Positions 6,901 through 54,119 of a stretch of 64,000 nt of DNA are shown in pieces. The notes beneath the pieces were generated by a model, which ran no database searches, was not told where the DNA came from, and saw only the letters and a program-made list of their open reading frames with translations. How positions within the stretch are numbered: position 1 is the stretch's first letter; each line of letters starts with the position of its first letter. A program made the translations under genes and the position numbers. This stretch comes from Hyalangium minutum (GTDB taxonomy: Bacteria > Myxococcota > Myxococcia > Myxococcales > Myxococcaceae): NCBI RefSeq assembly GCF_000737315.1, contig NZ_JMCB01000030.1:1-64000 (forward strand). Direction: 5' to 3'.

Positions 6901-6922
6901 GCCCCGCGGCCCCGCGCGCGGC

Positions 6923-12958: not shown

Positions 12959-12969
12959 GGTGGCTCTCC

Positions 12970-16190: not shown

Positions 16191-16272
16191 GGGAGTCCCT
16201 CCGAGCGGGCAGTCTCCCCGAAACACGGCCTGGCGCGCGACCCTTTCTGCCGCTGCGGAGTGGAAGAAGTAT

Positions 16273-16406: not shown

Positions 16407-16429
16407 GAATTCGTCAGAGAAAAATTGAA

Positions 16430-16562
16430 ACGCCCGAGTGGGGAAGCCGTTGACGTCTCGAGTCGAAGTCGAGTGCCTGTCCATTAGGCTATCCCGTCAT
16501 ATGGTGACGGGAGTTGGAGTCGAACCAACATAAGGGCTTGTATGGCCTCTCCGGCCGGGCGC
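16430..16562 (-). ncRNA. Y-RNA-like permuted tRNA mimic, copy 2, with intact anticodon arm (UCG)
   Basis: Terminal stem GCGCCCG/CGGGCGU and GGAGAGGCC/GGCUUCCCC enclosing T-arm GUUGG-UUCGACU-CCAAC, UCCCGUC-ACCAUAU-GACGGGA, D-arm GCCU-AAUGGAC-AGGC, anticodon arm CUCGA-CUUCGAC-UCGAG. Confidence 0.8.
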
Positions 16563-16607
16563 TTCAAAACCGTTTACCGATACCTCGAAGGACGCGGCGG
16601 CGCGGCC

Positions 16608-16620
16608 CCCCTGACAGGGG
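16608..16620. promoter_or_regulatory. perfect palindrome, candidate operator
   Basis: CCCCTG-A-CAGGGG between the RNA operon and the divergent lipoprotein gene. Confidence 0.3.
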
Positions 16621-16724
16621 ATTTTTTTGGCCATTCCTCCTCGGATTTCTGAGGCGGCCGCGACTCCAAACCCGCGAGCTTCCATGTGGCCCTCGCGGGA
16701 ATGGGCCTTGCAGCCAGGAGCGGT

Positions 16725-17066
16725 ATGCGAAAGAGCCTGCTTCTCTTCCTGATGTTCAGCGCCACGGCCTGCGGAGGAATGCTCGGGTCCGACGTGACGG
16801 GCCAGTCCTCGAATCCGGGCACCTACCGCATCTCGGACAGCGGCGTTCGCTGCGTCACGGCACCGTGCCCTTCTCTGCTCGCCACCCCGGAGGGTTCGGA
16901 GAAGGGCGTGCGAATCAGCGAGATCCACTTCCCTGCTTCGATGCTGGAGGCAGATCGGCGGGGCGTCATCAGCCGGGCGGCCACCTCCGGAGGACTGGTG
17001 GCGCGCGGGACCGTGCACGGAGCGGAAGGCACGGGCGTGTTCGAGCTCGAGGCCATCATCGAGTAG
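16725..17066 (+). CDS. small lipoprotein with CVTAPCP motif (DUF6748-like)
   Basis: AGGAG RBS, lipobox SATAC, DSGVRCVTAPCP. Confidence 0.7.
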   Translation: MRKSLLLFLMFSATACGGMLGSDVTGQSSNPGTYRISDSGVRCVTAPCPSLLATPEGSEKGVRISEIHFPASMLEADRRGVISRAATSGGLVARGTVHGAEGTGVFELEAIIE

Positions 17067-20404: not shown

Positions 20405-20582
20405 CGGGCGCTCGTGCCGGTGGTGCAGCAGAACCGCAGCCCACCTGACACTCCCCCAGCCCCGGTAGACCATTATTTCCGAGCCGGAAACCCTTTACAC
20501 GACTCCTCTACATCCAGGGCACGTACGCGGCGTCGCTGGATGAACGCCAGGGTGTTGAACCTGGCTCTCGTGGGGGGGTGCC

Positions 20583-23500: not shown

Positions 23501-26222
23501 GCTGGACGGGCAACTCACTCTCACCGCCCTGCCCCACCCCTTCTTCGGCGCAGGCCCCGGTGGTGCCTGGCTGGGCGCGCGCATCACCCTGCAGCGCTGG
23601 TTCTTCGATCCCGTGGTCAACGTGGAGGGCACCCACCGCGGGCTCGGCAACATCTTCACGCATGATCACTTCGGCCCCTCCACCCATCAGCAGGTGGGCC
23701 TCTACGCCACGGTGCTCACAGAGCCCCCAGACTCCACCTGGGTGCACAGCGAGACGGGAGTGGTCCTTGGGACGCGGAACGATGGAGGCCCCACGAGCTG
23801 GCAGGCCGCCATCCTCACAGGCGATCTGAACGGGGACGGCATCAACGACAGCTACCGCGAGTTCTTCTTGATGCCCGCGGACTTCCAGCATGCCTACGAG
23901 GAGGGCGTCTTCGTGGGAGCCGGCCCGGATGGCAGACCCTCTCCGGGGCTGGGCCCCACCGCGACGACCTTCCGCAACGCGATCGCCCCTCCCCACCGGC
24001 AGCAGGTCAACCCCGTGTTCCCAGACCTGTATGTGAACGCGGCCATCTGTCCCGGCGGCGTGCCCCGGCCGTGCCCGCAGGCCATCTCGGCCGATGACCC
24101 CGGCATGTTCGTGGTCAACTACCGCAACGAGCCCGTCGCGCTGCGCGTCTACGATCCGAACAAGCGTGGGCCGGACGGGCAGCGGGGCACACAGGCCTCG
24201 GGGCTGGGAGGAGACCTGGCCTATGCGCTGCAGACGCGCACGGACCGCGCCATCCCCGAGCTCAACACGGCGCTCGGCGACACGCCCTATCCGGCGCTCA
24301 CGAGGGATATCGGCGCGGGAGATCCCTTCACCCCGCTGGTGCGCTCCTTCGCAGGAGACAGGGTGCGGGTGAAGATCCAGGCCGGCGCGCACGAGGAGGA
24401 GTTCAACGCGACCGTCCACGGCGTGAAGTGGCTGCAGGGAGGCTCCAGCTTTGGCGCCGCACCCAACTCCGGCTGGCGCAATGCCCAGGCCCTCGGCATC
24501 TCCGAGCAGTTCACCTTCGAGATACCCTCGCTGCCCTGGCTCGGCCGGCCCGGCGAGCGGGTGGACCTCGCCTACGACATGAACACCAGCCAGGACGGGT
24601 GGTGGACCGGCGTCTGGGGCCTGCTGCGCACATACAACTCCTCGCGGACGGACTTGTTCCGCCTGCCCAACAACCGCACGCCGGTGCGGCACGGCAACGC
24701 CGACGATTTCTACACCGACAACAGCGGCACCTGTCCGCACGCCGCGCCCGTGCGCACCTATGATGTCACGGCGGTGCTGGCCAATACCGCGCTCGGCAAT
24801 CCGCTGGGCGTCACGCTGGTACCCGGGGATGACTCGGCCACCCAGCATGTTGGAGCGCCGGTCAACCCCAGGGGCGGCACGCTCGTCTACAACCCCCGGC
24901 GTACCGCGCTGGACAACGGCAAGTCAGGCCCGCTCCATGATCCTACCGCCCTGCTCTACGTGCGCACGGCGGACTTGGGTGCCAACGGCAAGCTCCGGCC
25001 CGGAGTTCCCATCGAGCCCCTGGTGCTGCGCGCGGCCGCGGGCGAGTGCCTGGAGATCACCCTGCGCAACCGGCTGCCGGGGGATCTCAACCGCAACGGC
25101 TTCTTCGACGACAACCCCGACCTGGCCAACCTCACCAGCCTCATCGGCGTGGTGAACCGCGACCGGCAGAACCCGCAGGGGGTGACCACCTTCAACAACA
25201 ACCTCATCCGGGCATCGAGCTGGGTGGGGCTGCATCCCCAGCTCGTGGCGTACGATGTCACCACGGCGGATGGCACCAACGTCGGCATCAACCCGCAGCA
25301 GCTCGTGCCCCCCGGCGGCTCGAGGCTCTACCGCTGGTACGCGGGAGACATCCGCAAGAGAGCGCGCAACAACACCAGCAGCGTCCAGCTCGTCGTCACG
25401 CCCATCGAGTTCGGCGGCTCCAACCTGGTCCCCGCCGACAAGATCAAGCAGGGCCAGAAGTCGCTGGTGGGCGCGCTGGTCATCGAGCCCCTGGGCACGG
25501 CGTGGACCGAGGACGCGAACCGGCGCTCCGCGGCCAGTGTAGGCCCCGACACGAACCAGGATGGCCGGCCGGACAAAACCCTCTTCCGGGACTTCGCCGT
25601 GGTGCACCAGAAGCAGATGAGCCACCGCTACGCGGACGGCACGGCGGTGGAGAACGTGCAAGCCGAGGGGATCGTCGCCGAGGACAACCAGGACGCGGGG
25701 CAGATGGCCCTCAACTATGGCACCGAGCCGATGTGGTTCCGCTTCGGTCTGCGGCCGAACGCCCCGTTCGGCAACGTCCCTGGAGGCTACGGCGCCGTGC
25801 CCAACGCCTTCATGGCCTACAGCAACGGCCTGGTGGGGGGAGATCCCGTTACGCCCGTGTTCACCGTGAAGGCGGGCCGGCAGACGCGCCTGCGTCTGCT
25901 CGAACCCCACGGCTCGTTCCGAGGCACCACCTTCAAGTTGCACGGCCACCTGTGGCAGCGGGACCCGTATGTGTGTCCGGGCTCGGCGGACCTGGGGCTC
26001 CCGGGCAAGTGCACCCCCACCGAGGTCCCCTCGCGAGCGCTGGGCCTCAACCCCGTGGGCTTCTATGTGGGCGGACAGGAGAGCGTGCAGCCCTCGACCC
26101 ACTTCGAGGTGTTCCTGCCGAGCGCCGGTGGCGCGAACGAGGTGTCCGGGGACTACCTGTTCCGGGACTACGGGAGCCTGGGCAACATCTCCGGCGAGTG
26201 GGGCCTGCTGCGCGTGGAGTGA
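20583..26222 (+). CDS. mnxG: large exported multicopper oxidase, MnxG-type putative Mn(II) oxidase
   Basis: 1879 aa; signal peptide; HVFHLHNHQW, IFHCHFYPHFAQGM (T1 Cu), QHIHLPKWD..DGAANGWNYEDG, FTHDHFGPSTHQ, FKLHGH. Confidence 0.83.
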   Translation: MKRTIPWIAGVLILLAVGAVVPMQEQEDSPVPDAPEPTHGTCARTLSANVVVLDQPLMFNRLGAQNVNGIVYALTRDVINMKTGRPLTQGGAPVPGEVILRPDKRPRPLVLRAAAGDCLRVRLTNLLTPVANPRDTPNIFNLLPFRIPIDDQVASRVAGFTVPGLQLVGSIASDSSFVGTNGNSLVRPGQTAVYTLLAPKEGTFLVTSDGATFGGEAGAGNSGNGMFAAINVEPPGANFYRSQVTEEELRLATTGTSPTGQPVINYEAVYPNKEPWLREGKSGLPILNMLWGKELVHTDIAAIIVGPKPDGSFPPNTYPLESVGKRNPSLPNRLEAFRENTALFHDEASAANAFQGFFLDPVFRFTLQGVRDAFMINYGSGGIGSEIIANRLSVGPMHDCLDCAYEEFFLSSFTVGDPAMLVDVPANLGLEALPPGATPPPGTTGPKATKAFYPDDPSNVFHSYTRDFVKMRNVHVGKEQHVFHLHNHQWLFNPNDDNSNYIDAQGIGPGSGYTYELVFGGAGNRNHTAGDAIFHCHFYPHFAQGMWALLRVHDTFEAGTKLAASGSGFHTAPFGLQDGTPAASSRALPDGEIVAGTPIPAVVPLPGRPMAPMPGKVEVVPNPNTTTASVFHPLSPGAPVPVGSNARVVQRAINPGYPFFIGGIENTVGQRPPTPPLDMLTEAEAAALQAGTNPLFAGRTDLVTGAGGFNGGLPRHTLEGVAAGGEALSVVSRLDFNKELVKARPVYLPEQGTDVEQTAMRFHATPSHPSTTLLRNGTPMAGTFASNGLPPSPSAPYFEPCRDDAGNPVRAGVPPRFFDGSGGLSTTGPVRFGIANPRVYKAANIQLDVVFNKVGYHFSQERILSLWEDVQPTLNKQRPPEPFVLRFNTFDCGKYLHTNLVPARYELDDYQVRTPTDVIGQHIHLPKWDLPSTDGAANGWNYEDGTLSPDAVRERITAINAFNSTPGVTPVPTLDGQLTLTALPHPFFGAGPGGAWLGARITLQRWFFDPVVNVEGTHRGLGNIFTHDHFGPSTHQQVGLYATVLTEPPDSTWVHSETGVVLGTRNDGGPTSWQAAILTGDLNGDGINDSYREFFLMPADFQHAYEEGVFVGAGPDGRPSPGLGPTATTFRNAIAPPHRQQVNPVFPDLYVNAAICPGGVPRPCPQAISADDPGMFVVNYRNEPVALRVYDPNKRGPDGQRGTQASGLGGDLAYALQTRTDRAIPELNTALGDTPYPALTRDIGAGDPFTPLVRSFAGDRVRVKIQAGAHEEEFNATVHGVKWLQGGSSFGAAPNSGWRNAQALGISEQFTFEIPSLPWLGRPGERVDLAYDMNTSQDGWWTGVWGLLRTYNSSRTDLFRLPNNRTPVRHGNADDFYTDNSGTCPHAAPVRTYDVTAVLANTALGNPLGVTLVPGDDSATQHVGAPVNPRGGTLVYNPRRTALDNGKSGPLHDPTALLYVRTADLGANGKLRPGVPIEPLVLRAAAGECLEITLRNRLPGDLNRNGFFDDNPDLANLTSLIGVVNRDRQNPQGVTTFNNNLIRASSWVGLHPQLVAYDVTTADGTNVGINPQQLVPPGGSRLYRWYAGDIRKRARNNTSSVQLVVTPIEFGGSNLVPADKIKQGQKSLVGALVIEPLGTAWTEDANRRSAASVGPDTNQDGRPDKTLFRDFAVVHQKQMSHRYADGTAVENVQAEGIVAEDNQDAGQMALNYGTEPMWFRFGLRPNAPFGNVPGGYGAVPNAFMAYSNGLVGGDPVTPVFTVKAGRQTRLRLLEPHGSFRGTTFKLHGHLWQRDPYVCPGSADLGLPGKCTPTEVPSRALGLNPVGFYVGGQESVQPSTHFEVFLPSAGGANEVSGDYLFRDYGSLGNISGEWGLLRVE

Positions 26223-32482: not shown

Positions 32483-32559
32483 TGGTCGGGGAGACAGGAT
32501 TTGAACCTGCGACCCCTTGGTCCCGAACCAAGTGCTCTACCAGGCTGAGCCACTCCCCG
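32483..32559 (-). tRNA. tRNA-Pro(CGG)
   Basis: 77-nt cloverleaf, anticodon arm CTTGG-TTCGGGA-CCAAG, GGTTCAAATCC T-arm, encoded CCA. Confidence 0.97.
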
Positions 32560-40215: not shown

Positions 40216-40488
40216 TCAACAGGCGATGCGGATGTTGGGCGCCTTGCTCCGCTTGCTCGGGAGGTGGAGTGTCAGCTTCGCACCCTCCTTCTGCCCCTCC
40301 TCGACCACGGACAGATCGATCTTAGGGTCGAGCTTGTACTTGAAGTGCTTCTTCAGGGCCGCCCGCGGATCCTGGAGCAACTCCGAACGAAATGCATCAT
40401 CTGTCCGCGCGCGTTCCTGAGCCTGGGTCCACACGTCCAGCCAATTCTTGAACTCCGACACAGCTTCCTTGGCGTTTTTCGCGGCCAT
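40216..40488 (-). CDS. NHLP-like TOMM precursor (BMA_0021-like leader)
   Basis: DDAFRSELLQDPRAALKKHFKY..LSVVE..LTLHLP leader; short core ending NIRIAC; GGAGGGGAG RBS; AT-rich codons. Confidence 0.72.
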   Translation of the reverse strand: MAAKNAKEAVSEFKNWLDVWTQAQERARTDDAFRSELLQDPRAALKKHFKYKLDPKIDLSVVEEGQKEGAKLTLHLPSKRSKAPNIRIAC

Positions 40489-40511
40489 CTCCCCTCCGTG
40501 GATGATGTCTT

Positions 40512-40520
40512 ATAATACCA
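40512..40520 (-). promoter_or_regulatory. extended -10-like element for the precursor gene
   Basis: TGGTATTAT (TGn + TATTAT) on the minus strand, about 24 nt upstream of the ATG; overlaps TATAAT (40511-40516) on the plus strand. Confidence 0.45.
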
Positions 40521-40571
40521 CTTTCGCTTAGGACCCGGCTCGGATTCAGCGGCTCGAGCTCGCGACCCTCC

Positions 40572-43500
40572 ATGGAAAACGCTCCTCCATCGATTCATCC
40601 GCTCACGCCGCTGCAGGAACGCTACACGCTGCAGGCCAAGCTGGGAGAGGGCGGCTTCGGCACCATCCACGAGGCCACGCAAATCACCACGGGCCAGCGG
40701 GTCGCGGTGAAGTTCCTCCGCCTGCGCCCAGACGATGCGAACACGAGCGTGGAGAAGCAGGCCGCCCGCTTCCGCCGGGAAACTTCCCTGTGCGCCAAGC
40801 TGTATCACCCGCACATCGTCCGGCTCATTGACGCGGGCCTCAGCGCGGAGAACCAGCTCTACAGCGTCTTCGAGTTCGTCCCCGGCAAGAACCTGGCGCA
40901 AGTCCTCAAGGAAGAGGGACCGCTCGCGCCCCGTGAGGTGCACCGGCTGATGAGCCAGGTGCTCGATGCGCTGGGCTGTGCCCACAAGGAGAACGTGGTG
41001 CACCGGGACCTCAAGCCGCAGAACATCATGGTGACGGGGACCGGTGTGCGGCGCAACGCGGTGGTCCTCGACTTCGGGCTGGGCACGCTGGTCGAGGACA
41101 GCCTGTCGGCCCAGGACACGCGCCTGACCGGGACGATGGAGTGGATGGGCACTCCCTCCTACGCCGCGCCGGAGCAGCTGCGCAAGGACGCCACCACTGC
41201 CGCGGCGGACCTGTACGCGTGGGGACTCATCTTCATCGAGTGTCTGACGGGCGTGCGGATCATGCAGGGCGCCACCATGGCGGAGGTGCTCTACAAGCAG
41301 CTCGGTCCTGAGCCCGTCCCCCTGCCTCCCTCCCTGCGCAATCATCCGCTCGGGCAGTTGCTGCGCCGGGTGACGGAGAAGAACTCCCCGGAGCAGCGCG
41401 GCACCGCCGCGGAGCTGTTGTCGCAGCTCGAGGAGATGGATCTCTCGGGTCTGCTCTCCGCCCCGGCCTTGCCGGAGGCGGTCCTTCTGCCCTCCACCAC
41501 GCCCAGGACGGGCGAGGGCCAGGCCCTCACGCCCACGGCCGTCGGCAGCGCCCTGACTCTGACCACGAACGTCCCACCCCAGTGGATGCTCGCGGGAGGC
41601 GAGCGCCGCCAGGTGGTGGCCCTGTGCTGCGGGCTGGTCCTGTCCCACCCGGACCCTGCACGCGTGGACTTCGAGGACCTGGAGCTGCCCCTGCGGGCTT
41701 CCCAGGAGCTGCTCGGCGCCATCGCCGCCCGCTACCACGGGCACATCATGAGCGTGCTCGGGCAGCAGGTGCTCATGTACTTCGGCTATCCCAGCACGCG
41801 CGTGGATGACGCTCGCCGCGCGGCCGCCGCTGCGATGGCCATCCTCGAGGGCATCGACACCCTCAACTCCCAGCGAAAGGAGCCCCTGCGCTGCTCGGCC
41901 CGCATCGGCCTCCACGTCGGGCAGTTGGTGGTCTCCAAGGAGGCGGCCGCCCAACCTTGGCGGGAGTTCGGCGTCACCGCCTCGGTGGCGGCGCAGCTCG
42001 GCGAGCGGGCCGAGCCAGGAACGATTCTGGTGGGTGAGAGCGCGTACCCCCTGCTGCGAGACCACTTCACGCTGGAGTCCCAGGGCCAGGTGCCCACGGG
42101 GTTCCTTCAGCAGCCCATGGAGCTCTTCAGCCTGAAGGGGCCGCGCGTCGCCACGGACGAGGCGCCCTCCATGCGGGGCAGCATCGTCATGGTGAGCCGG
42201 GATCACGAGCTCGGCCTGCTGCTGGAGCGGTGGAGGCAAGTCGACGAGGGCTCGGGCCAGGTGGCGCTCGTCCGGGGTGAAGCGGGGATCGGCAAGTCCC
42301 GCCTGTGCCATGAGCTGCGGCGGAAGCTCCAGGGCAGGGAGCACCAGTTCTTCGAGTGCCGTTGCTCGCCCGAGGCTCGCAACAGCCCGCTGTTCCCCGT
42401 CATCGAGCCGCTCAAGCAGCTGCTCGGCTACAACGAGGGCGACTCCCCGGCGCAGCGGCTTGCGCGCATGGAGGAGGCGCTGTCGCGCTACCCCCTGGAG
42501 CTCAAGGAGGCCGTGCCGCTGGTGGCGAGCCTGTTCGCCCTGCCGGTGGAAGATCGCTATCCCACGCCGCAGATGACGCCGCTGAAGCTCAAGGAGCTGA
42601 CGCTGCGGCTGCTCGTGACGCTCTTCTATGAGATGGCCGAGCAGTGCCCCCTGCTGCTGTTCGTGGAGGATCTGCACTGGGCGGACCCCACCCTGCTGGA
42701 GCTGCTGGGCGCCCTGCTGGCGGAGTGCGCCACCTCGCCGGTCTACCTGCTGCTCACCTCCCGGCCGGAGTTCAGCACCCCCTGGCCCAATGCCCCCATC
42801 CTGCAGATCCAGCTCGGGCGCCTGGAGCGGGAAGCCACCGAGCAGCTCATCCGTGCGCTCACCGAGGCCAACCCCCTCCCTCCGAGCATGCTGGAGCAGA
42901 TCGTCCAGCGCACCGAGGGCGTGCCGCTGTTCGTCGAAGAGCTCACCCGCATGGTGGCGGAGACACGGCCCTCCTCGCCGCAGAGCGGCCTGGCCATTCC
43001 CTCCACGCTGCGGGGCTCGCTGCTGACGCGCTTGGACCTCCTGGGGTCCCCCAAGGTGACGGCGCAGATCGCCTCGGCGCTCGGGCGCGAGTTCCAGTAC
43101 GACGTGCTGTGCGCCATCTCGCCTCGCGATGAGGCGGAGCTGAAGGAGGACCTGGAGCAATTGCTGCGCGCGGACCTCATCTACACGCGCCGCCGGGCCC
43201 GCAGCCGCACGTACATCTTCAAGCACGCGCTCATCCAGGACATCGCCTACGACTCGCTGCCGAAGGCCACGCGCCGCCACCTGCACGCGCGCATCGCCGA
43301 GACGCTCCAGGCCCGCTTCCCGGAGCTCGCCGAGACACGGCCCGAGCTGCTCGCTCACCACTTCGCCGCGGCGGACCAGCTGCTCCAAGCGCTGGAGTAT
43401 GGCCGCAAGGCGGCGGTCATGGCGCTCCAGCGCTCGGCCAACGAAGAGTCCGCGCAGCACACCACCCAGGCGCTGGGCTGGCTCCAGACGGTGGAGAACC

Positions 43501-44651
43501 CCTCCGAGCGCCGTGAGACGGAGCTGGGGCTCAACGGCCTGCTGCTCACGGCGCTCATGGGCTACCGGGGCTTCAGCTCCGAGGAGGTGGGCAACGTCCT
43601 GCGCCGCTCCATGGCGCTGCTGGAGGAGCAGGGCGACAGCCCGAGCGCCTTCCCCACGCTGCACTCGCTCTGGGGCTACCACGAGATGCTCGGCGAACAC
43701 GCCCAGGCCAAGGAGATTGGCCGCCGGTGCCTGGAGCTGGCGCGCCGCAACAAGGACGAGGGCCAGCAGATCTGCGCGCTCATCCAGTTGGGTCACGGCC
43801 TCTGGTTCGATGGCCGCTTCGAGGAGGCCCAGGTGCACTTCGAGGAGGTGCTCGCGCTCTACGAGCCGTCCAAGCACGGAGGCAATGCGTACATCTACGC
43901 CGTGGACAGCCGCGCCCATGCCACCGGCATGCTGGCCCTGACGCACTGGTATCTGGGGTTCACGGACCTGGCATTGAAGCGGGCGCGCGAGGCGCTGGAG
44001 TTCGCCCGGCTCATCCAGCACTCCAACACCCTGGCCATGGCCACCTACTACCTGACGCTGCTGCACCAGCTTCGCGGCGAGCGGGAGGAGGTGCTCCGGC
44101 TGAGCACGGAGCTGCTGGAGATCTCCGTGGCCCAGGGGCTCCCCATGTGGAAGGGCCTCGCCCTGCTGCTCAACAGCTGGGCCAAGCGCCAGGCCACGGA
44201 GGCCGAGCAGATTCTGGCCGTGATGGAGTCCGTCCGCGTCTACCAGACGCTGCCGTACCAGCTCGGCCGCGTCGCGGAGACGGAGGCGGAGGTGGGCGCG
44301 GTAGACAAGGCCCTCCAGCGCGTGGAGCGCGCTCTGCAGTTGGCCACCTCGAAGGAGGAGCTGTACGCGCTCCCCGAGCTGTACCGCCTCCGAGGAGAGC
44401 TGCTCCTGCGCAGTACCCCGTCCGCCACGGAAGAGGCAGCCGTCTCCTATCAGAAGGCCATCGAGATGGCGCAGGAGCAACGGGCGCGGGTGGTGGAGTT
44501 CCGCGCCCGGCTGGCCCTCGCACGCCTCAAGCCCGAGCAGCTCCGGGAGCCGGGCTTCCGCGCCGCGCTCGCCGGGCTGCAAGACACGCTCACGCCTCTG
44601 GGCCAGGTGCCCGAGCGCGAGGAGACAGGCCGCCTCCTCGCCCAGGCCTGA
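40572..44651 (+). CDS. TOMM-system kinase/cyclase fusion (Ser/Thr kinase, cyclase-like, AAA ATPase, TPR)
   Basis: 1359 aa; GEGGFG, VAVK, HRDLKPQN, DFG; GEAGIGKS, FVEDLHWAD; helical repeats; context fits TIGR03903 as recalled. Confidence 0.88.
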   Translation: MENAPPSIHPLTPLQERYTLQAKLGEGGFGTIHEATQITTGQRVAVKFLRLRPDDANTSVEKQAARFRRETSLCAKLYHPHIVRLIDAGLSAENQLYSVFEFVPGKNLAQVLKEEGPLAPREVHRLMSQVLDALGCAHKENVVHRDLKPQNIMVTGTGVRRNAVVLDFGLGTLVEDSLSAQDTRLTGTMEWMGTPSYAAPEQLRKDATTAAADLYAWGLIFIECLTGVRIMQGATMAEVLYKQLGPEPVPLPPSLRNHPLGQLLRRVTEKNSPEQRGTAAELLSQLEEMDLSGLLSAPALPEAVLLPSTTPRTGEGQALTPTAVGSALTLTTNVPPQWMLAGGERRQVVALCCGLVLSHPDPARVDFEDLELPLRASQELLGAIAARYHGHIMSVLGQQVLMYFGYPSTRVDDARRAAAAAMAILEGIDTLNSQRKEPLRCSARIGLHVGQLVVSKEAAAQPWREFGVTASVAAQLGERAEPGTILVGESAYPLLRDHFTLESQGQVPTGFLQQPMELFSLKGPRVATDEAPSMRGSIVMVSRDHELGLLLERWRQVDEGSGQVALVRGEAGIGKSRLCHELRRKLQGREHQFFECRCSPEARNSPLFPVIEPLKQLLGYNEGDSPAQRLARMEEALSRYPLELKEAVPLVASLFALPVEDRYPTPQMTPLKLKELTLRLLVTLFYEMAEQCPLLLFVEDLHWADPTLLELLGALLAECATSPVYLLLTSRPEFSTPWPNAPILQIQLGRLEREATEQLIRALTEANPLPPSMLEQIVQRTEGVPLFVEELTRMVAETRPSSPQSGLAIPSTLRGSLLTRLDLLGSPKVTAQIASALGREFQYDVLCAISPRDEAELKEDLEQLLRADLIYTRRRARSRTYIFKHALIQDIAYDSLPKATRRHLHARIAETLQARFPELAETRPELLAHHFAAADQLLQALEYGRKAAVMALQRSANEESAQHTTQALGWLQTVENPSERRETELGLNGLLLTALMGYRGFSSEEVGNVLRRSMALLEEQGDSPSAFPTLHSLWGYHEMLGEHAQAKEIGRRCLELARRNKDEGQQICALIQLGHGLWFDGRFEEAQVHFEEVLALYEPSKHGGNAYIYAVDSRAHATGMLALTHWYLGFTDLALKRAREALEFARLIQHSNTLAMATYYLTLLHQLRGEREEVLRLSTELLEISVAQGLPMWKGLALLLNSWAKRQATEAEQILAVMESVRVYQTLPYQLGRVAETEAEVGAVDKALQRVERALQLATSKEELYALPELYRLRGELLLRSTPSATEEAAVSYQKAIEMAQEQRARVVEFRARLALARLKPEQLREPGFRAALAGLQDTLTPLGQVPEREETGRLLAQA

Positions 44652-44660
44652 GGGGCCTCG

Positions 44661-46235
44661 CTACGGCATGGGAACGCTCTGAGGGAAGTGGAAGAAGTCC
44701 TTCGGATCGTAGTGGCGCCGGATCTTCTCCAGCTTGTCCAGGTTGCTGCTCCAGTAGCGCTGGGCGTAGTCCGGCGTCTCCGGATACGGGTAGTTCTGGT
44801 ACGACTGGCCATTGAGCAGGGGCTTCGCCGGCTGGACGAAGCCGGTCAGCCACTTCTGGGCCTCCGCCCGCTGCGACTCCTCCAGCCACATCGAGATCCA
44901 GCTGAAGTCCATGTACACGTCGCGGTGGACGAACGCGGTGTCGTGCGGCGGGACGCGGTTGATGGCGCCGCCGTAAGGCTCGATGAGGATGAAGGTCAGA
45001 CTCATGTTCTGCTCTTCATTCCCGTTCTTGACGCGGAACACCGGTGACGTCTTGAAGTACTCGATGGCACTGGCCCACTCGTCCCGGCGGAGCTTCCGGC
45101 CGACGTAGCCCGCCATCTGGTTGGCCAGGTACGGGGAGTTGGGAGGCAGCTCCGGGATGTCCGCCACGAGCGAGTCGTTCAGGTACCGGTACGTCCCCCG
45201 CTTGGAGATGGCGAGATGCCCCGTCTTCAGCAAGGGGGCCAGCTCCTTGCGGCCCTCGGACTCCTCGCCGTGGTACATGCCGCGCATCACCAGCACCTGC
45301 TTGGGGGGCCGGCCGTGCTTCCCGGGCTGCGACATCACCACGGCCAGGTAGCCCAAGCGGTCCGACGCGCCCTCCTTCGTGTAGTGCTCCTGGAGTTGCT
45401 GGAGGGCCTCGGGGGCCTGGTCGATGCTCCACTGGATGCCAAAGCCCCAGACCTCCCGGAGATGATAGAGCTCGTATTCCAGCTCCAGCAGGACACCGAA
45501 GTTGTTGCCCGTCCCGCCCCGGAGCGCCCAGAAGAGCTCGGTGTGCTCCTTGGCGCTGGCGTGCACGATGCGGCCGTCCGCCAGCATCACCGTCGCCCCG
45601 CGCAGGGCATCGCAGTTCATCCCGTACTCGCGCGAGGTGAAGCCGTAGCCACCGCCCATCATATGTCCAGCCACCGCCACATCGCCGCAGCCCCCCCCGG
45701 GCACGTGCAGCCCGTACCCGTCGAGGACCGCGTTCAACAGATCGAGCGGCGTCCCCGCTCCGACGCGAGCGCGCTTCTGGCCCTCGTCGACGACGCAGTA
45801 GCGGATCTGGCTCACGTCGATGATCATCCCGCCGTTGTTGGCCGAATACCCCGCCGTGCTGTGGCCCCCAGAGCGGCAGGTGACTCGGAGCGAGTGCTGG
45901 TGCGCGAACTCCAGGCACCGCCGCACGTCGTCCGCGCACTCGCAGTAGACGATGAGCTGGGGATACTTCTGGAACGCCTGATTGAAGAGCTGCCGGGCCG
46001 TCTCGTAGTCCGGGTCATAGGGCGTGACGACCTTGCCCAACAGGGGCCGCTCTGGATCTCCCAAGGTGGCCAGTTGCTCGGGAGTGAGGCTCTCCCACAG
46101 CGGGGGCTTCTCTGGCATCTGGAACAGGGCCGAGGCCTCGCGGGCCAGGGTGTTCATGCCCGGCTTCCCGGTGGCCTGGCTCCATCTCTGAATGCGCTCG
46201 TACTGCGCCACTGCCCTCTTGGTGCGCGCGAACAT
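44661..46235 (-). CDS. berberine-bridge-enzyme-like FAD oxidase
   Basis: RSGGHS, GGGCGDVAVAGHMMGGGYG, WALRGGTGNNFG, YQNYP, N..L..I..YDP..FF. Confidence 0.88.
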   Translation of the reverse strand: MFARTKRAVAQYERIQRWSQATGKPGMNTLAREASALFQMPEKPPLWESLTPEQLATLGDPERPLLGKVVTPYDPDYETARQLFNQAFQKYPQLIVYCECADDVRRCLEFAHQHSLRVTCRSGGHSTAGYSANNGGMIIDVSQIRYCVVDEGQKRARVGAGTPLDLLNAVLDGYGLHVPGGGCGDVAVAGHMMGGGYGFTSREYGMNCDALRGATVMLADGRIVHASAKEHTELFWALRGGTGNNFGVLLELEYELYHLREVWGFGIQWSIDQAPEALQQLQEHYTKEGASDRLGYLAVVMSQPGKHGRPPKQVLVMRGMYHGEESEGRKELAPLLKTGHLAISKRGTYRYLNDSLVADIPELPPNSPYLANQMAGYVGRKLRRDEWASAIEYFKTSPVFRVKNGNEEQNMSLTFILIEPYGGAINRVPPHDTAFVHRDVYMDFSWISMWLEESQRAEAQKWLTGFVQPAKPLLNGQSYQNYPYPETPDYAQRYWSSNLDKLEKIRRHYDPKDFFHFPQSVPMP

Positions 46236-46300
46236 CCGGTCTCTCCTCGGTGAACCTACCCGCCACATTCTACGGTGAGGTAGGGTCCATCCGACCGCCC

Positions 46301-48487
46301 ATGCGCCCTTCCCTTGAGGCCATCCTGCGTTGGAGCCCTGATCTGCAGGTAGAGCCTGCGGCTTCGGGAGGAGCTCTCCTGCTGAGCGAGCAGGCGTGGT
46401 TCCCGCTCGTCGAGAGCCCCTACGAGGAACTGGCGGCACTGGTGGATGGCCAGCGCACGGTCCAGGAGATCCTGGAGGCCGCCGCTCCCGCGCTCACGCC
46501 TCACGAGGTCTTCTTCGCGCTGCGCGACTTGCTGGAGCAGGGCTACCTCGTGGAGCTGCCGCCCGGGAGCGAGTCCCCACTGGTGGGATTCTGGTCCGCG
46601 ATGGGCGCTGAGCCTGGCTCCGCCTCGGAGCGGGTGGCCTCTACACCCGTCTCGGTGGCGGGTGGCGGCGAGCCCGTGGCCACCCTGCTCGCGGAGGCAC
46701 TGCGTGGGGCCGGACTGGACGTGCGCCCCGATGCCGCACTGCGCGTGGTTGCCACCGACGACTACCTGTCTCCCGAGCTCGAGGCTTTCAGTGAGCGGGC
46801 CCGGGCCGAGGGCGTGACGTGGCTGCCGGTGAAGCCCGGTGGCCGCAGGGGCTGGTTCGGCCCGCTGGTCCGTCCATCGCAGGGCCCGTGCTGGCACTGT
46901 CTGACGGAGCGGCTGAGGATGAACCGCGCCGCCGAGCAGGTGGCGGGCGTCTCACGGCGTCCCTTACCCTCTCCTCCCGCCGCCGTGAGCGCCTGTCTCC
47001 AGGTGGCAGCCGTGCAGCTCGCCCGGTGGATTGCCTCCGGTCCCGAGTCAGATGCGCTGGACCCGCTCATCACGCTGGATCACCGGACGCTGGAGGTGAA
47101 ACGGCACCCCGTCACCCGCCTCCCCCACTGTGCCCGCTGCGGGCAGCCCGCTCAGGCCCCTGCGCGCGCAGGGGCGCCCCTCGTGCTGTCTCCGCGGCCC
47201 AAGCGCTTCACCCGGGAGGGTGGACACCGGATCTGCTCCCCGGAGGAGACCTCTCAACGGCTGGCCTCGCAGCTCAGTCCCCTCACCGGCATCATCTCTG
47301 GGGTGAATCCCGTGCCTCGGAGCGAGCCAGCGCCGTGGACCACGTTCGCCGCGCACTACTCCGTGCCGGTCCGCCCGGGGGACACCCTGCGCTCGCTCCA
47401 GCGCCGCTTCAGCAGCGGCAAGGGCGTCACCGAGGCTCAGGCCCAGGTGAGCGCCCTGTGCGAGGCCATCGAGCGGCACCACTGCTTCCTCCATGGGGAC
47501 GAGCCCCGGGTGCATGCCCGCGCGCACGAGCTGGATGCTCCGCACGTGCCGCCGCACGAGCTGCTGCACTTCAGCGAGGCCCAGTACCGGAATCGGGCCT
47601 CCTGGAACGAGCAGGTGTACGATCCCCGCCAGCGCATCCCCGCGCCCGTGTCCTTGGACGCCCCGCTGGACTGGACCCCTGCGTGGTCGCTCACGCATCA
47701 GGCGCGCCGCTACCTCCCCACCGCGCTCTGCTACGAGGTGCCGCCCCCAGCGGGAGAGCCCTTCTGCTTCCACAACTACCATGGGCACGCCGCGGGCAAC
47801 GTCCTGGAGGAGGCCATCCTCCAAGGCTTCCTGGAGCTGGTGGAGCGGGATGCCATCGCGCTGTGGTGGTACCCCCGTGTCCCGCGCCCCCAAGTGGCCC
47901 TGGAGCGCTTCGAGAGCCCGTGGATCGGCTCGATTCAGCAGTGGTACCGCGAGCGGGGGTGGAAACTGCAGGTCGTGGACATCACCACGGACCTGGGCAT
48001 CCCCGTCTTCGCAGCCGCCGCGTACGCCCCGGCTCAGCAACAGCTCTACCTGGGCTTTGGCTGCCACCTGGAGGCGCCCCTGGGAGTGCAGCGAGCGCTG
48101 ACCGAGCTGAACCAGATGCTCGACTGGGGACGGGCGAGCGGGGATGACGGCTCGCAGCGCGTGGATCCGGAGGCGCTGGAGTTCCTCCTGGGTGAGAGCG
48201 CGCTCCCCGCCAAGGGCCCCTCGGACTACACGGCCCAGGCGTCGGGAGATCTGCGCGAGGACATCCTCACGTGTGTGGAGCGGACGCGGGCCCTCGGGAT
48301 GGACTTCCTGGTGGTGGACCAGACCCGCCCCGAGGTCGACTTCCCGGTCGTCAAAGTGGTCGTCCCCCCGCTGCGGCACCACTGGCCTCGCTTCGGCCCC
48401 GGCCGGCTGTACGACGTGCCCGTGAAGCTCGGGTGGCGGAGTGCCCCCGTGGAAGAGGCCGCGCTCAACCCCTTCTTCCCTTTTTGA
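46301..48487 (+). CDS. fused TOMM leader-binding/E1-like + YcaO cyclodehydratase
   Basis: WFGPLVRP..PCWHCL..R, SSGKG, EAIER, GHAAG, ELVERDA, C-terminal LNPFFPF; GTG 46250 is an alternative start. Confidence 0.92.
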   Translation: MRPSLEAILRWSPDLQVEPAASGGALLLSEQAWFPLVESPYEELAALVDGQRTVQEILEAAAPALTPHEVFFALRDLLEQGYLVELPPGSESPLVGFWSAMGAEPGSASERVASTPVSVAGGGEPVATLLAEALRGAGLDVRPDAALRVVATDDYLSPELEAFSERARAEGVTWLPVKPGGRRGWFGPLVRPSQGPCWHCLTERLRMNRAAEQVAGVSRRPLPSPPAAVSACLQVAAVQLARWIASGPESDALDPLITLDHRTLEVKRHPVTRLPHCARCGQPAQAPARAGAPLVLSPRPKRFTREGGHRICSPEETSQRLASQLSPLTGIISGVNPVPRSEPAPWTTFAAHYSVPVRPGDTLRSLQRRFSSGKGVTEAQAQVSALCEAIERHHCFLHGDEPRVHARAHELDAPHVPPHELLHFSEAQYRNRASWNEQVYDPRQRIPAPVSLDAPLDWTPAWSLTHQARRYLPTALCYEVPPPAGEPFCFHNYHGHAAGNVLEEAILQGFLELVERDAIALWWYPRVPRPQVALERFESPWIGSIQQWYRERGWKLQVVDITTDLGIPVFAAAAYAPAQQQLYLGFGCHLEAPLGVQRALTELNQMLDWGRASGDDGSQRVDPEALEFLLGESALPAKGPSDYTAQASGDLREDILTCVERTRALGMDFLVVDQTRPEVDFPVVKVVVPPLRHHWPRFGPGRLYDVPVKLGWRSAPVEEAALNPFFPF

Positions 48488-48528
48488 CAGCTCCCCTCGC
48501 GGATTTCCCGGCGTAGGGTGGCGAGGCC

Positions 48529-49689
48529 ATGCGCAACGGGATGCGAGTCATCGACGCGGATCGCCACGTCTTCGAGCCGCTGGAGATGTGGCGCACCTAC
48601 CTGGATCCCCGCTTCCGGGACGATGCCCCCGTCGCCGTGCCTCGCCCCATCCACGAGCCGCTGGCGGAACGTGTGAGCAGGCTCGGCGCCCGGGGCCTCA
48701 CCTATCAGCCCGTCGACATCCTGGTGCGCGGCCAGCCCATCCAGCGCCCCCTCTCCGAGCGCGCGGAGCTGGCGCTGCTCGATGCCGAGGAGCGCGCGGA
48801 CGCGGACCTGGACACCTCCACCCCCGAGGCCCACCTGGCGCACATGGATGGCTGCGGCGTGGATCTGGCCTTCTGTTACCCCTCCACTGCCCTGTACATC
48901 GTCGGGATGGAGACGCTCGAGCCGGAGCTCGCGCACGCCCTGGTCACCGCCTACAACCGGTGGCTGCACGACTTCTGCAGCGCGGCCCCCGAGCGGCTCC
49001 AAGGCGTCGGGCTGGTGGCGCCCCACGCGCCGAAGGCCATGGTGGAGACGCTCGATCAGATCTCCTCCTATGGCTGGCGCGCCGTGGTGCTCCGGCCCAA
49101 CCTGCTCCAGGGCCGCTCGCTGAGCCACCCGGACTTCGAGGCCTTCTGGGCCGCCTGTGCCGAGCGCTCGCTCGCGGTGGCCCTCCACGAGGGTGCCCAT
49201 GCGCTGCGCCCCACCGCAGGAGCCGACCGCTACACCACGCGCTTCGGCCAGCATGCGTGCTCCCACCCCATGGAGCAGATGATGGGGATGCTGGACCTCA
49301 TCGAGGGCGGCATCCTGGAGCGCCACCCCCACCTGCGTGTGGGCTTCTTCGAGGCGGGCTGCGGCTGGGTCCCCCCCTGGCTCTGGCGCCTGGACGAAGT
49401 CGAATACAAGCACCTGGCCTCTGAAGTCGCCGAGCGGGTGAAGCGGAAGCCCTCGGACTACGTGCGCCGCCAGTGCTTCGTCACCCTGGAGCCGGGCGAG
49501 CCGGGGATCAGCGAGGCCTTGAGCTGGATGGGAGCGGACCGGCTGCTGTTCGGCACCGACTTTCCCCACGCCGATCACGACGGCTCCATCGTGGACGAGG
49601 TGCTGCGGCTGGAGCAGCGGCTGCCTCCCGGGGTGCTCGCGGGAATCCTCGGGGCCAATGCCGAGGCCTTCTATGGCCTGAGCCGGTGA
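48529..49689 (+). CDS. amidohydrolase_2 family protein
   Basis: IDADRH, ALHEG, FFEAGCGW, LFGTDFPHAD. Confidence 0.88.
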   Translation: MRNGMRVIDADRHVFEPLEMWRTYLDPRFRDDAPVAVPRPIHEPLAERVSRLGARGLTYQPVDILVRGQPIQRPLSERAELALLDAEERADADLDTSTPEAHLAHMDGCGVDLAFCYPSTALYIVGMETLEPELAHALVTAYNRWLHDFCSAAPERLQGVGLVAPHAPKAMVETLDQISSYGWRAVVLRPNLLQGRSLSHPDFEAFWAACAERSLAVALHEGAHALRPTAGADRYTTRFGQHACSHPMEQMMGMLDLIEGGILERHPHLRVGFFEAGCGWVPPWLWRLDEVEYKHLASEVAERVKRKPSDYVRRQCFVTLEPGEPGISEALSWMGADRLLFGTDFPHADHDGSIVDEVLRLEQRLPPGVLAGILGANAEAFYGLSR

Positions 49690-49716: not shown

Positions 49717-49745
49717 AACGGCTCGGCGGAGTCCGCCGAGCCGTT
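49717..49745. terminator. 13-bp hairpin between convergent genes
   Basis: AACGGCTCGGCGG-AGT-CCGCCGAGCCGTT. Confidence 0.65.
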
Positions 49746-49786: not shown

Positions 49787-49945
49787 CTAGGCAGTCGGGG
49801 CAGGAGCCGCCGCCGCCTTCTTGCGGCTGGAGGTCTTGCGGGCGGCAGTCTTGCGCGCCCCGCCCTTCTTCGCCGTCGCCGTCTTCTTCTTCGGCGCAGC
49901 AGCCTTCTTGGTGGTCTTCTTCGCGGTCTTCTTCTTCGCGGCCAT
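49787..49945 (-). CDS. small Lys/Ala-rich histone H1-like protein
   Basis: MAAKKKTAKKTTKKAAAPKKK.. 52 aa; GGAGGG RBS. Confidence 0.75.
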   Translation of the reverse strand: MAAKKKTAKKTTKKAAAPKKKTATAKKGGARKTAARKTSSRKKAAAAPAPTA

Positions 49946-52736: not shown

Positions 52737-54119
52737 ATGTTCCGCTTTCGCCTCGGAAGCATTCCCGTCGAGGTCCAGGCCAGCCACCTCATCACCTCCG
52801 CGGTGCTGGGCCTCAGCTTCGCACCTGCTGGCCGACCAGGCCTCATCGGCTCGATGGGGTTCCAGGTCGTCTCCTGGATGTTCATCGTCTTCGTCTCCGT
52901 GCTCATCCACGAGCTGGGCCATGCCGTGGCCAGCAAGGCCTTCGGCTACCAGCCGAGCATCACCCTCGAATGGATGGGCGGGCACACCCGGCCCAACGCC
53001 CCGGGCCCCATCCCCTGGAGCCGGGACGTGCTGCTGACGCTGGCAGGGCCCCTCTTCGGCCTGGGGCTCGGGATCGCCTGCTATGTGGGCAAGCGCTCCC
53101 TGGGCCACCAGTCCGATGTGCTCGCCTACCTGCTGGGCGTGGGAGCGCTCGCCAACTTCTTCTGGGCCGGGCTCAATATGGCCCCCGTGCTTCCTTTGGA
53201 TGGAGGCCGGATTACAAGTGTGTTGGCCATGCGGCTCTTCGGCCGGGAGCGGGGCTTCCTGTGGGCCCAGATCCTCGCGGTCATCACCTCCGTGGGCCTC
53301 GTGCTCTGGAGCATCGACAACCGGCAGATGTTCCTGGCCGTCTTCTTCGCCATGTTCGGGTTCCAAGCCCTGCGCGCCGCTTACGACGCCATGAAGGGGC
53401 CGGAGCAGGAGTCCCGGGAGCAGTCTCCCCAGGCGAACACGCTCCAGAGGGCCCAAGCGGCGCTGGCGAAGAACCAGCTCGAGGAAGCGCGGCACCTGGC
53501 CGCCACGGTGCTGGACTCGGGCGAGGCGCTCACGCCCGACCTGGCCAGCCGCGCCCACCACACGCTGGGGTGGGTGGCGCTCAAGAAGGGCCAGGGGCGC
53601 ATGGCGCTCGACCACTTCTCCCAAGTGCAGGGCCAGCCGGTGGAGCCCCAGGCGCTGGCGGCGGCCTTCTCCTTAATAGGAGACGAGGGCCGCGCTCTGC
53701 CGCTGTGGGAGATGGCCTGGCGCGACAGCGGAGACCGCACGGTGATGCACGAGTACGCCGGCAGCTTGATCCGCGCGGGCAAGGAGCCCCAGGCGCTGCG
53801 GCTGCCCCAGGTGGACCCCGCGGCGGCCTTCTCGTGCGCGGAGCGGGTGCTCTTCATCCGGGGCGCCTTCTCCGAGGCGGCGGCCATGGGAGAGCGGGCC
53901 CTGGCGTACGCCCCCAGCGCCACCATCGCCTATGACGCGGCATGCGCGTTCGCCCGTGCACACAACATTCCTGACGCGGTGCGCCTGCTGCAACGCGCCA
54001 AGGAGCTGGGGTTCCGGGATGGGACCTATGCCGCCTCGGACGAGGATCTGGCTCCCCTCCATGGAAACCCGGGGTTCGAGGCCTGGCTCACGGAACTTCG
54101 GCAATCTGCGCCGTCCTGA
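52737..54119 (+). CDS. site-2 (M50) protease with C-terminal TPRs
   Basis: HELGH, LAGP, NMAPVLPLDGG; YDAACAFA TPR. Confidence 0.87.
   Translation: MFRFRLGSIPVEVQASHLITSAVLGLSFAPAGRPGLIGSMGFQVVSWMFIVFVSVLIHELGHAVASKAFGYQPSITLEWMGGHTRPNAPGPIPWSRDVLLTLAGPLFGLGLGIACYVGKRSLGHQSDVLAYLLGVGALANFFWAGLNMAPVLPLDGGRITSVLAMRLFGRERGFLWAQILAVITSVGLVLWSIDNRQMFLAVFFAMFGFQALRAAYDAMKGPEQESREQSPQANTLQRAQAALAKNQLEEARHLAATVLDSGEALTPDLASRAHHTLGWVALKKGQGRMALDHFSQVQGQPVEPQALAAAFSLIGDEGRALPLWEMAWRDSGDRTVMHEYAGSLIRAGKEPQALRLPQVDPAAAFSCAERVLFIRGAFSEAAAMGERALAYAPSATIAYDAACAFARAHNIPDAVRLLQRAKELGFRDGTYAASDEDLAPLHGNPGFEAWLTELRQSAPS

Follow-up and report, generated by a model that had tools for sequence, protein, structure and literature searches.

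The five genes of the locus

The DNA analysed here, 64,000 nucleotides from the myxobacterium Hyalangium minutum (contig NZ_JMCB01000030.1, positions 1 to 64,000, forward strand; hereafter the window), holds a gene cluster that an initial annotation had taken for an orphan pathway for a thiazole/oxazole-modified microcin (TOMM) or, more broadly, a peptide made on the ribosome and modified after translation (RiPP). That annotation listed, between core genes, a precursor, a kinase-cyclase-ATPase-TPR protein, an oxidase resembling the berberine bridge enzyme (BBE), a fused YcaO protein and an amidohydrolase. Translation of the open reading frames (ORFs) together with domain searches confirmed all five genes within positions 40216-49689, at the places originally given (Table 1). 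The genes around the cluster are housekeeping ones, namely those for pyruvate kinase, an NFACT/RqcH-like protein, GH1 and DusB. The cluster is not a single operon: the precursor gene is divergent from the kinase gene, and the oxidase gene is convergent with the kinase gene and divergent from the YcaO gene, with a common 65-bp intergenic region between the latter two. The start of the oxidase gene is uncertain because its ORF is open up to 46439; we took the start from a 524-aa gene call in a relative (L001). The YcaO ORF encodes 745 aa from a GTG at 46250, or 728 aa from the Met equivalent to position 46301, which is the start called in relatives.

Table 1. Features of the cluster, with positions in the window (aa, amino acids of the respective protein; nt, nucleotides)
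Feature	Position	Strand	Basis
Precursor gene, 90 aa, ending ...LPSKRSKAPNIRIAC-stop (NIRIAC)	40216..40488	-	Translation; sub-threshold TIGR03793/TIGR03795; precomputed PF27793
TOMM-system kinase/'cyclase' fusion, 1359 aa	40572..44651	+	TIGR03903; Pfam Pkinase, Guanylate_cyc, AAA_16, TPR_12
Ser/Thr kinase domain	aa 18-284, nt ~40623-41423	+	HRDLKPQN, DFG and APE motifs intact
Degenerate cyclase-homology domain	aa ~343-520, nt ~41598-42131	+	Catalytic residues replaced
AAA_16 STAND NTPase	aa 541-721, nt ~42192-42734	+	GEAGIGKS and FVEDLHWAD motifs; Walker motifs intact
TPR/MalT-like sensor region	aa ~948-1318, nt ~43413-44525	+	TPR Pfam domains
BBE-like/VAO-type flavoprotein oxidase, ~524 aa	44661..~46235	-	PF01565 (FAD_binding_4) 98.5 bits, PF08031 (BBE) 50.3 bits
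Fused leader-binding E1-like/YcaO cyclodehydratase	46250 or 46301..48487	+	TIGR03882, TIGR03604, PF02624 above cutoffs
Winged-helix/RRE-like and E1-like part	nt ~46370-47296	+	TIGR03882 protein
YcaO domain	nt ~47414-48475	+	PF02624
Predicted BarH/LynB7-like amidohydrolase-related dinuclear (di-iron) oxygenase, 386 aa	48529..49689	+	PF04909 Amidohydro_2; motifs; PDB matches
G+C-rich inverted repeat (AACGGCTCGGCGGA...TCCGCCGAGCCGTT)	49717..49745	none	Sequence; self-inverted BLAST match; kept also in L001 and L002

The same gene set lies between the same flanks in three diverged relatives known from public read assemblies (L001, L002 and L092), the sequence of L001 ending before the precursor gene. 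Their YcaO proteins are 95% (L001) and 87% (L002) identical to that of the window, and the L092 precursor is 66% identical. In pairwise comparison, dN/dS amounts to 0.15 (Amidohydro_2 gene), 0.18 (YcaO gene), 0.22-0.29 (kinase gene), 0.29-0.41 (precursor gene) and 0.42-0.48 (BBE oxidase gene), the last being the least constrained of the five. Purifying selection thus acts on all five genes, most strongly on the Amidohydro_2 and YcaO genes, and values of this range in every gene indicate that all five are real genes under constraint.

Family and domain searches of the cluster found no transporter, no leader protease and no azoline dehydrogenase dependent on flavin mononucleotide (FMN), as had been said at the outset. 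Nitroreductase and ThcOx domains were likewise absent from the cluster and from its flanks.

A precursor family ending mostly in cysteine

The precursor of the window contains a single Cys, which is its final residue, and nothing follows Cys90. A profile search for its family gathered 85 members, of which 63 end exactly in Cys and 5 more have a Cys within two residues of the end. The window precursor falls in a short subgroup of 90 aa whose members all end in K/R-I-A-C, its own orthologues ending in KIAC. Haft et al. (PMC2887384) had already remarked on the terminal Cys or Cys-Cys of such systems, on their large Ser/Thr kinase and on the missing transporter.

Its formal classification is less clear-cut. 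The precursor scores under the NCBIfam cutoffs of both TIGR03795 (27.6 versus 41, the match spanning only profile positions 10-65 of 114) and TIGR03793 (28.1 versus 50.9). A precomputed match to PF27793 (RNP_Burkhold) exists for the window precursor and its orthologues, being flagged weak in the 66%-identical orthologue of L092; a local Pfam search of the window gave no PF27793 match at E <= 0.01. A six-frame profile search revealed no second precursor or partner chain in the window, and each close relative likewise has one precursor. The earlier assignment to the BMA_0021 type stands in part: the PF27793 match and the terminal Cys agree with it, and the score below the TIGR03795 cutoff and the single, short, divergent copy without a tandem partner do not.

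The AlphaFold model of the precursor (predicted local distance difference test, pLDDT, 67) places three helices within residues 3-49 and leaves residues 65-90 as a disordered tail. Fold matches to it were non-significant (E >= 0.5), and nearly all were precursors of the proteusin type with a nitrile hydratase-like leader peptide (NHLP), nitrile hydratase alpha subunits or Os1348. Counting such matches as weak support, the model is consistent with a helical leader domain of the NHLP or NHLP-Burk kind followed by a short tail.

A second class of precursors in the family has no terminal Cys and ends in SFTT, SFTS or FTFTS (P0137, P0159, P0167, P0171-P0178 and others). An Argonema locus (L013, 7422-8299) encodes two precursors ending in VVTT and VLTT and has no oxygenase homologue within 10 kb. 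These Cys-less precursors may be partner chains or substrates of the oxazoline type.

A YcaO branch with a recurrent Amidohydro_2 partner

The fused E1-like/YcaO protein exceeds the cutoffs of TIGR03882 (129 versus 36.9) and of the SagD-type model TIGR03604 (223.8 versus 219.25), and matches PF02624 with 299 bits. Across 39 YcaO homologues, the Zn-binding Cys pairs C214, C217, C294 and C297 (CxxC...CxxC) and the YcaO-domain residues E405, E408 and R409 are invariant. In other NHLP systems, engagement of the leader by the fused E1-like/YcaO protein has been shown (PMC12455567).

Scanning genome contigs with the single window YcaO protein recovered no relative. A search with the 39-sequence YcaO alignment gave 80 loci, and those from exact-protein look-up brought the set to 86, which we searched with the five window proteins. 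Among the 26 loci nearest to the window by their YcaO protein, 17 have a homologue of the Amidohydro_2 protein, which we predict below to be an oxygenase, adjoining the YcaO gene or at most 2 kb from it; of the 60 loci with more remote YcaO proteins, none has one (Fisher p = 8e-12). Loci with the pair come from two phyla: myxobacteria (Archangium, Stigmatella, Sorangium, Corallococcus, Polyangium and Kofleriaceae) and cyanobacteria (Moorena, Rivularia, Phormidium, Nostoc and Crinalium). Wherever a precursor was found in an oxygenase-linked locus, it has a Cys among its last three residues.

Other tailoring genes vary by lineage. In Corallococcus, the oxygenase is accompanied by a radical SAM enzyme and by a ThcOx-type FMN dehydrogenase, another locus has radical SAM enzymes, and Stigmatella has an amidase. 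In the Corallococcus locus (L011), a radical SAM gene of the DUF4070 type lies between the YcaO and oxygenase genes, and a ThcOx-like FMN dehydrogenase gene is present as well (12224-14179 and 15276-16751); the precursor there ends in HCCGSPCC, and a gene for a CmlA-like di-iron beta-hydroxylase lies upstream at 6403-8214.

Seen against these loci, the genes turned out to be co-conserved in the relatives, where all five keep the same flanks, and the YcaO-oxygenase pairing reaches well beyond them, the BBE oxidase being the part confined to this lineage. The description of the amidohydrolase as an unusual tailoring enzyme does not hold, since it is a conserved partner of this YcaO branch and its motifs and nearest structures are those of di-iron oxygenases.

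The Amidohydro_2 protein as a predicted di-iron oxygenase

The best matches of the Amidohydro_2 protein among PDB sequences are PtmU3 (7e-27), the SfbO/TruffO entries 8sm6-9, AibH and DitZ, with LigW behind (1e-15). Its structural model (pLDDT 91) has PtmU3, TruffO, SfbO and DitZ as its top folds, by a small margin over ACMSD (6e-20 versus 4e-17). The superfamily of amidohydrolase-related dinuclear oxygenases (AROs) is defined by an N-terminal D-x-H and a C-terminal D-x-P-H-x-D/E motif (PMC13154177), and the window protein carries both, as D11-R-H13 and D344-F-P-H347-A-D349. Seven residues (D11, H13, H220, E275, D344, H347 and D349) are conserved at 99-100% in 121 homologues; by motifs and numbering they correspond to the LynB7 ligands D11, H13, H197, E252, D320, H323 and D325, with a constant offset of +23/24. 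The terminal Asp, D349, is of the BarH/LynB7 type, PtmU3 having a Glu at that place.

In the presence of Fe(II) and O2, LynB7 turns 2-thiazoline-4-carboxylic acids into thiazoles by oxidative decarboxylation, and the carboxamide is no substrate for it (PMC10127204). A cyanobacterial homologue, E0U9F9, performs the same reaction with a di-iron cofactor, and the dominant clade of E0U9F9 is confined to cyanobacteria and myxococcota; about 69% of its members have a thiazoline synthase as neighbour, and no natural product has been associated with it (PMC13154177, 2026). By sequence and fold, we predict that the Amidohydro_2 protein is an ARO of the BarH/LynB7 type acting as a thiazoline-4-carboxylate oxidative decarboxylase. 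With that identity, the step that oxidizes a terminal ring would be present in the cluster and would come from a non-flavin enzyme.

Two other functions have to be weighed for this protein. It could be a true hydrolase which, like the thiazoline-specific amidohydrolase PurAH of the bottromycin pathway, trims a follower or leader from the cyclized precursor, so that the product keeps a thiazoline or its carboxylate. The Pfam assignment as Amidohydro_2, the one or two residues that follow the Cys in some family precursors and would have to be removed, and the want of a dedicated protease in the cluster all speak for such a role. The window precursor, however, has nothing beyond its Cys that could be trimmed, the protein bears the D-x-H and D-x-P-H-x-D oxygenase signature with every ligand of the dinuclear site invariant, and the bottromycin amidohydrolase is absent among its 40 PDB sequence matches, LynB7 itself being reported as only 14% identical to PurAH (PMC10127204). 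We regard a hydrolase as very improbable.

Alternatively, the protein could be a non-oxidative decarboxylase of the ACMSD/LigW type or a hydratase, with the BBE flavoprotein serving as the azoline-to-azole oxidase in place of the FMN dehydrogenase. LigW, ACMSD, IDCase and the resorcylate decarboxylases are indeed significant matches by both sequence and fold, and the flavin oxidase gene does adjoin the YcaO gene over their shared 65 bp. Yet these decarboxylases rank below the dinuclear oxygenases in both kinds of search, and the motif of the first strand, D-x-H, is that of PtmU3 and LynB7. The second half of this proposal fares no better. The BBE oxidase has EncM and other BBE-like oxidases as its top PDB sequence matches and contains the RSGGHS motif typical of a covalent His-FAD linkage, but among the 86 YcaO loci its gene occurs besides the window only in L001, L002 and L092. 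Absent from all other oxygenase-linked loci, it cannot serve as the system's general oxidase, and it is also the gene under the least constraint. We consider this combination improbable. With respect to the unusual tailoring enzymes first proposed, what remains specific to the lineage is the BBE oxidase alone.

A Ser/Thr kinase with a dead cyclase domain

The match of the kinase protein to TIGR03903 reaches 1132 bits (cutoff 705.75) and runs over profile positions 2-1266 of 1267. Kinases of this type occur in 8 of the 17 oxygenase-positive loci and in 2 of the 69 negative ones. Archangium and five of the cyanobacterial oxygenase-positive loci have other giant proteins with Ser/Thr kinase, AAA_16, TPR and GAF domains next door. 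A protein that joins a Ser/Thr kinase to a STAND module (signal transduction ATPase with numerous domains) thus accompanies the system across phyla.

Class III nucleotide cyclases use two metal-binding Asp residues together with an Asn and an Arg that act on the transition state. We aligned the cyclase domain of the window protein with class III cyclases of solved structure and with a canonical relative. Where these have F-x-D, G-D, Asn and Arg, it has C-C-G, G-Q, Ser and Gln, respectively, and the first metal-binding Asp is lost in every TIGR03903-type protein examined, those of Burkholderia included. The cyclase of the initial annotation is accordingly a domain without catalytic residues, that is, a catalytically dead pseudo-cyclase as judged by its residues, and an active cyclase with a second-messenger output was rejected on that ground. 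At the position of the first metal Asp (~41610-41640, aa ~347-356), the window protein reads ALCCGLV and the Burkholderia proteins LCCCVA and LCCSVG (L093 and L094); the kinase of a metagenome-assembled genome (MAG) of Rickettsiales (L028) has Gly-Cys (VVGCTFS) in place of the Cys-Cys.

The protein carries an effector kinase at its N-terminus, ahead of a STAND NTPase and a TPR sensor. Taken with the partner of the kinase in Burkholderia loci, a protein with an FHA domain, this arrangement points to signalling rather than to peptide chemistry. From this and from its co-occurrence with the system, the protein is probably a sensor or regulator and not a biosynthetic cyclase. We weighed this against a biosynthetic role in which the kinase phosphorylates Ser/Thr residues of the precursor tail (in the window S78 and S81, which are conserved; in other precursors, tails rich in Thr/Ser), as do the kinase domains of class III/IV lanthipeptide synthetases. 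Its catalytic motifs are intact, its gene divergently adjoins the precursor gene, many family cores are rich in alternating Thr/Ser, and the LanL and LanKC kinase-domain models match it at E = 2e-23 and 2e-12. PknB-type models nevertheless score higher, and these matches reflect generic similarity among Hanks kinases. The protein has no lyase or LanC-like domain, STAND NTPase and TPR modules are typical of signalling proteins, the partner of the kinase in the Burkholderia prototypes has an FHA domain, a reader of phospho-Thr, and in roughly half of the oxygenase-linked loci the kinase is built differently. Phosphorylation of the precursor by this kinase seems to us a slim prospect.

It might also be asked whether the five genes work together at all, either because they are neighbours without a joint function or because the kinase-STAND protein belongs to anti-phage defence. 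The four genomes with all five genes are syntenic throughout the region, which makes co-location there weak evidence, and two PADLOC kinase models, PD-T4-6 and mad6, match the kinase. These matches, however, cover only residues ~14-290, the generic kinase domain, and the other four proteins have no PADLOC match; defence was rejected for this reason. The kinase/YcaO/precursor triad recurs in Burkholderiales, myxobacteria and the Rickettsiales MAG with unrelated flanks, and the pairing of YcaO and oxygenase recurs in two phyla. Chance proximity or defence is in our view extremely unlikely.

A proposed route to a C-terminal thiazole

Since 63 of the 85 members of the precursor family end in Cys, cyclization of the terminal Ala-Cys followed by decarboxylation is the reading that fits best. 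In the pathway we propose, the 90-aa precursor is predicted to fold into a nitrile hydratase-like helical leader with a flexible tail ending in Ile-Ala-Cys. The E1-like/YcaO protein would bind the leader and, driven by ATP, cyclodehydrate the Ala89-Cys90 amide to a C-terminal 2-substituted thiazoline-4-carboxylate, with a loss of 18 Da. Judging by the small-molecule activity of its homologues, the oxygenase with Fe(II) and O2 would then decarboxylate this ring oxidatively to a C-terminal thiazole, with a further loss of 46 Da, or 64 Da net. The BBE-like flavoprotein may add an oxidation specific to this lineage, and the kinase/dead-cyclase/STAND-NTPase/TPR protein, by its co-occurrence, may act as a sensor or regulator coupled to the system. 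As the cluster encodes neither export nor leader removal, the product may be a small protein terminated by a thiazole, or a peptide freed by an unlinked protease.

A route made of YcaO and a di-iron oxygenase would explain several features at once: the terminal position of the Cys; why an FMN dehydrogenase is not needed here; why Corallococcus, with several Cys in the precursor tail, has both a ThcOx-type dehydrogenase and the oxygenase; and why the oxygenase gene is the most constrained of the cluster. Taken as a whole, we hold this explanation to be probable, with moderate confidence.

A number of points weigh against it. The Burkholderia prototypes end in Cys-Cys and yet have no oxygenase homologue within 9 kb, so a terminal Cys alone does not imply decarboxylation. 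In certain oxygenase-linked precursors the Cys is followed by one or two further residues (ACF, GCF, TCG and TCCA), which would require an extra trimming step. For the cyclodehydratase, a 2025 preprint from the Mitchell lab notes that no characterized azoline-forming YcaO had been demonstrated to act directly on a C-terminal residue (PMC12338566), and cyclodehydration of Ala89-Cys90 would therefore be new chemistry; furthermore, the window YcaO protein ends in LNPFFPF (LNPLFPF among close relatives) where the family has LNPxPxF, the second Pro of this proline-rich motif (PxPxP type) being shifted. For the oxygenase, the correspondence with the LynB7 ligands comes from motifs and numbering and not from a direct alignment to BarH, LynB7 or E0U9F9, and the published activities were obtained on small-molecule surrogates, so that activity on a peptide is here a prediction. 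Finally, conservation of the BBE gene across four syntenic genomes does not establish a functional linkage, and the roles suggested for the BBE oxidase and the kinase are inferred.

A further possibility concerns the purpose of the modification. The cluster could be an intracellular peptide-signal module and not an antibiotic pathway: a C-terminal thiazole, put directly onto a small folded NHLP protein by YcaO and the di-iron oxygenase, would be read by the TPR sensor of the STAND kinase, which would switch on phospho-signalling. This would account for the presence of a kinase-STAND protein beside the system in three phyla and for the absence of any encoded exporter or leader protease. We think it unlikely, though worth stating; it would be the first case of YcaO acting directly on a C-terminal residue that is unprocessed, and a ribosomal counterpart of the terminal thiazole of barbamide and dolastatin.

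The proposed route to a C-terminal thiazole makes a prediction that mass spectrometry can test, namely a ribosomal protein or peptide with a decarboxylated terminal thiazole, 64 Da lighter than its precursor. The window version, with one 90-aa precursor and one Cys, is the simplest test case available. If the route is correct, it would represent a new way of maturing a RiPP C-terminus, in which YcaO acts directly on the terminal residue and a di-iron enzyme then carries out the oxidative decarboxylation. It would also provide a genetically encodable cap for peptide C-termini, the thiazole being that of dolastatin-type drugs, and one would then have to ask why a giant STAND protein with a Ser/Thr kinase is tied to such a pathway.

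Features around the cluster

The inverted repeat at the 3' end lies between the convergent oxygenase gene and a gene for a small basic protein, and probably marks the 3' boundary of the cluster. This basic protein (49787-49945, minus strand; MAAKKKTAKKTTKKAAAPKKK...) has 52 aa, is Lys/Ala-rich and histone H1-like, and is kept in L001, L002 and L092; its composition led us to reject the ORF as a candidate precursor. A sigma-70-like site (TTGACA-17-TACCAT) lies upstream of its gene at 50060-50032. Promoter, terminator and Rfam scans of the cluster gave nothing informative.

The sole protease-like gene nearby is a 460-aa ORF at 52737-54119 (plus strand), 3 kb downstream of the cluster and past GH1 and DusB, with a weak Peptidase_M50 match (1e-9) and TPR repeats. 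Upstream of the region studied is a very large ORF of about 1887 aa (20559-26222, plus strand) whose G+C content at third codon positions is of the coding type. A normal tRNA-Pro(CGG) gene is found at 32483-32559 (minus strand). At 16337-16496 (minus strand), Rfam gives a marginal 160-nt match to its tRNA model (33 bits, gathering score 29), at which ARAGORN makes no call.

Comparison with known systems

The closest known context is the NHLP-Burk or TOMM kinase-cyclase family, defined by TIGR03903, TIGR03795 and TIGR03882 (Haft, Basu & Mitchell, 2010; PMC2887384), in which the precursors occur as a tandem or fused pair. The initial annotation had placed the cluster in this TIGRFAM-defined setting of kinase/cyclase, YcaO and BMA_0021-type precursor, and rightly so: TIGR03903, TIGR03882 and TIGR03604 all score above their cutoffs, and the RefSeq-annotated Burkholderia prototypes are alike. 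Three defining features of the family are found in the window and two are not, the precursor falling below the curated cutoff and having no tandem partner. The FMN-dependent azoline dehydrogenase of McbC/ThcOx type by which canonical TOMM clusters are recognized is also missing from the window cluster, and is present in the Corallococcus relative.

Like the window, the Burkholderiales systems have a protein of ~1350 aa with Ser/Thr kinase, cyclase-homology, NTPase and TPR parts, in which Cys-Cys replaces the first metal Asp of the cyclase, a fused leader-binding/YcaO protein, and a nitrile hydratase-like precursor ending in Cys or Cys-Cys (FTCC in the prototypes), and they have no transporter. 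The RefSeq-annotated loci of Burkholderia and Paraburkholderia comprise an FHA-domain protein, the kinase/cyclase, two precursors and YcaO. The FHA gene, which has no counterpart in the window, stands directly upstream of the kinase/cyclase gene (L093, 7940-8941; L094, 7841-8857). The prototype has tandem precursors of ~115-120 aa, one with and one without a terminal Cys, and neither the oxygenase nor the BBE oxidase, whereas the window has a single divergent precursor of 90 aa and both of these enzymes. Identity between the two is 32% for the kinase and 34% for YcaO. Neither system has a characterized product. The family received its bioinformatic definition in 2010 and we found no report of a product since, which agrees with the initial annotation; nor did the literature we found, whose coverage is incomplete, describe a characterized product of any YcaO plus oxygenase or kinase/cyclase RiPP system.

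For the oxygenase, the relevant comparison is with BarH, LynB7, DolJ and E0U9F9, with which the window protein shares a TIM-barrel Amidohydro_2 fold, the D-x-H and D-x-P-H-x-D motifs with the BarH-type terminal Asp, and the seven metal-site residues. AROs of this type likewise occur in myxobacteria and cyanobacteria with a thiazoline-forming enzyme adjoining. The difference lies in the substrate. BarH, LynB7 and DolJ act on small polyketide-nonribosomal peptide hybrids after the heterocyclization (Cy) domain and thioesterase of a nonribosomal peptide synthetase have formed and released them, whereas the substrate predicted here is the YcaO-made C-terminus of a ribosomal protein of ~90 aa. The locus joins two orphan observations, the NHLP-Burk/kinase-cyclase family and the BarH-like clade beside "thiazoline synthases" described in 2026 without a known natural product, and in the literature we found no paper connecting YcaO/NHLP-Burk and ARO.

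The bottromycin pathway (YcaO, PurAH and the P450 BotCYP/BtmJ) arrives at the same kind of end that we predict for the window, a YcaO-made thiazoline turned into a decarboxylated C-terminal thiazole. It does so by cyclizing an internal Cys, removing the follower with a Zn/Co amidohydrolase and decarboxylating oxidatively with the P450; in the window, by contrast, the Cys is already terminal, there is no P450, and the "amidohydrolase" is itself the predicted oxidative decarboxylase. The azol(in)e RiPPs of the proteusin/NHLP type (PMC12455567) share with the window a structured nitrile hydratase-like leader and a fused cyclodehydratase, and the best, though weak, fold matches of the precursor model are the proteusin precursors 9cjx and 8tb1. 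Classical NHLPs differ in having a Gly-Gly cleavage motif, cores rich in Cys, Ser and Thr, and dedicated ABC transporter/peptidase genes, none of which goes with the window precursor and its single Cys at the very end. Considering these systems together, the cluster is best explained as a RiPP-type maturation system of the NHLP-Burk/TOMM kinase-cyclase family, within a myxobacterial-cyanobacterial branch that gained a di-iron oxygenase.

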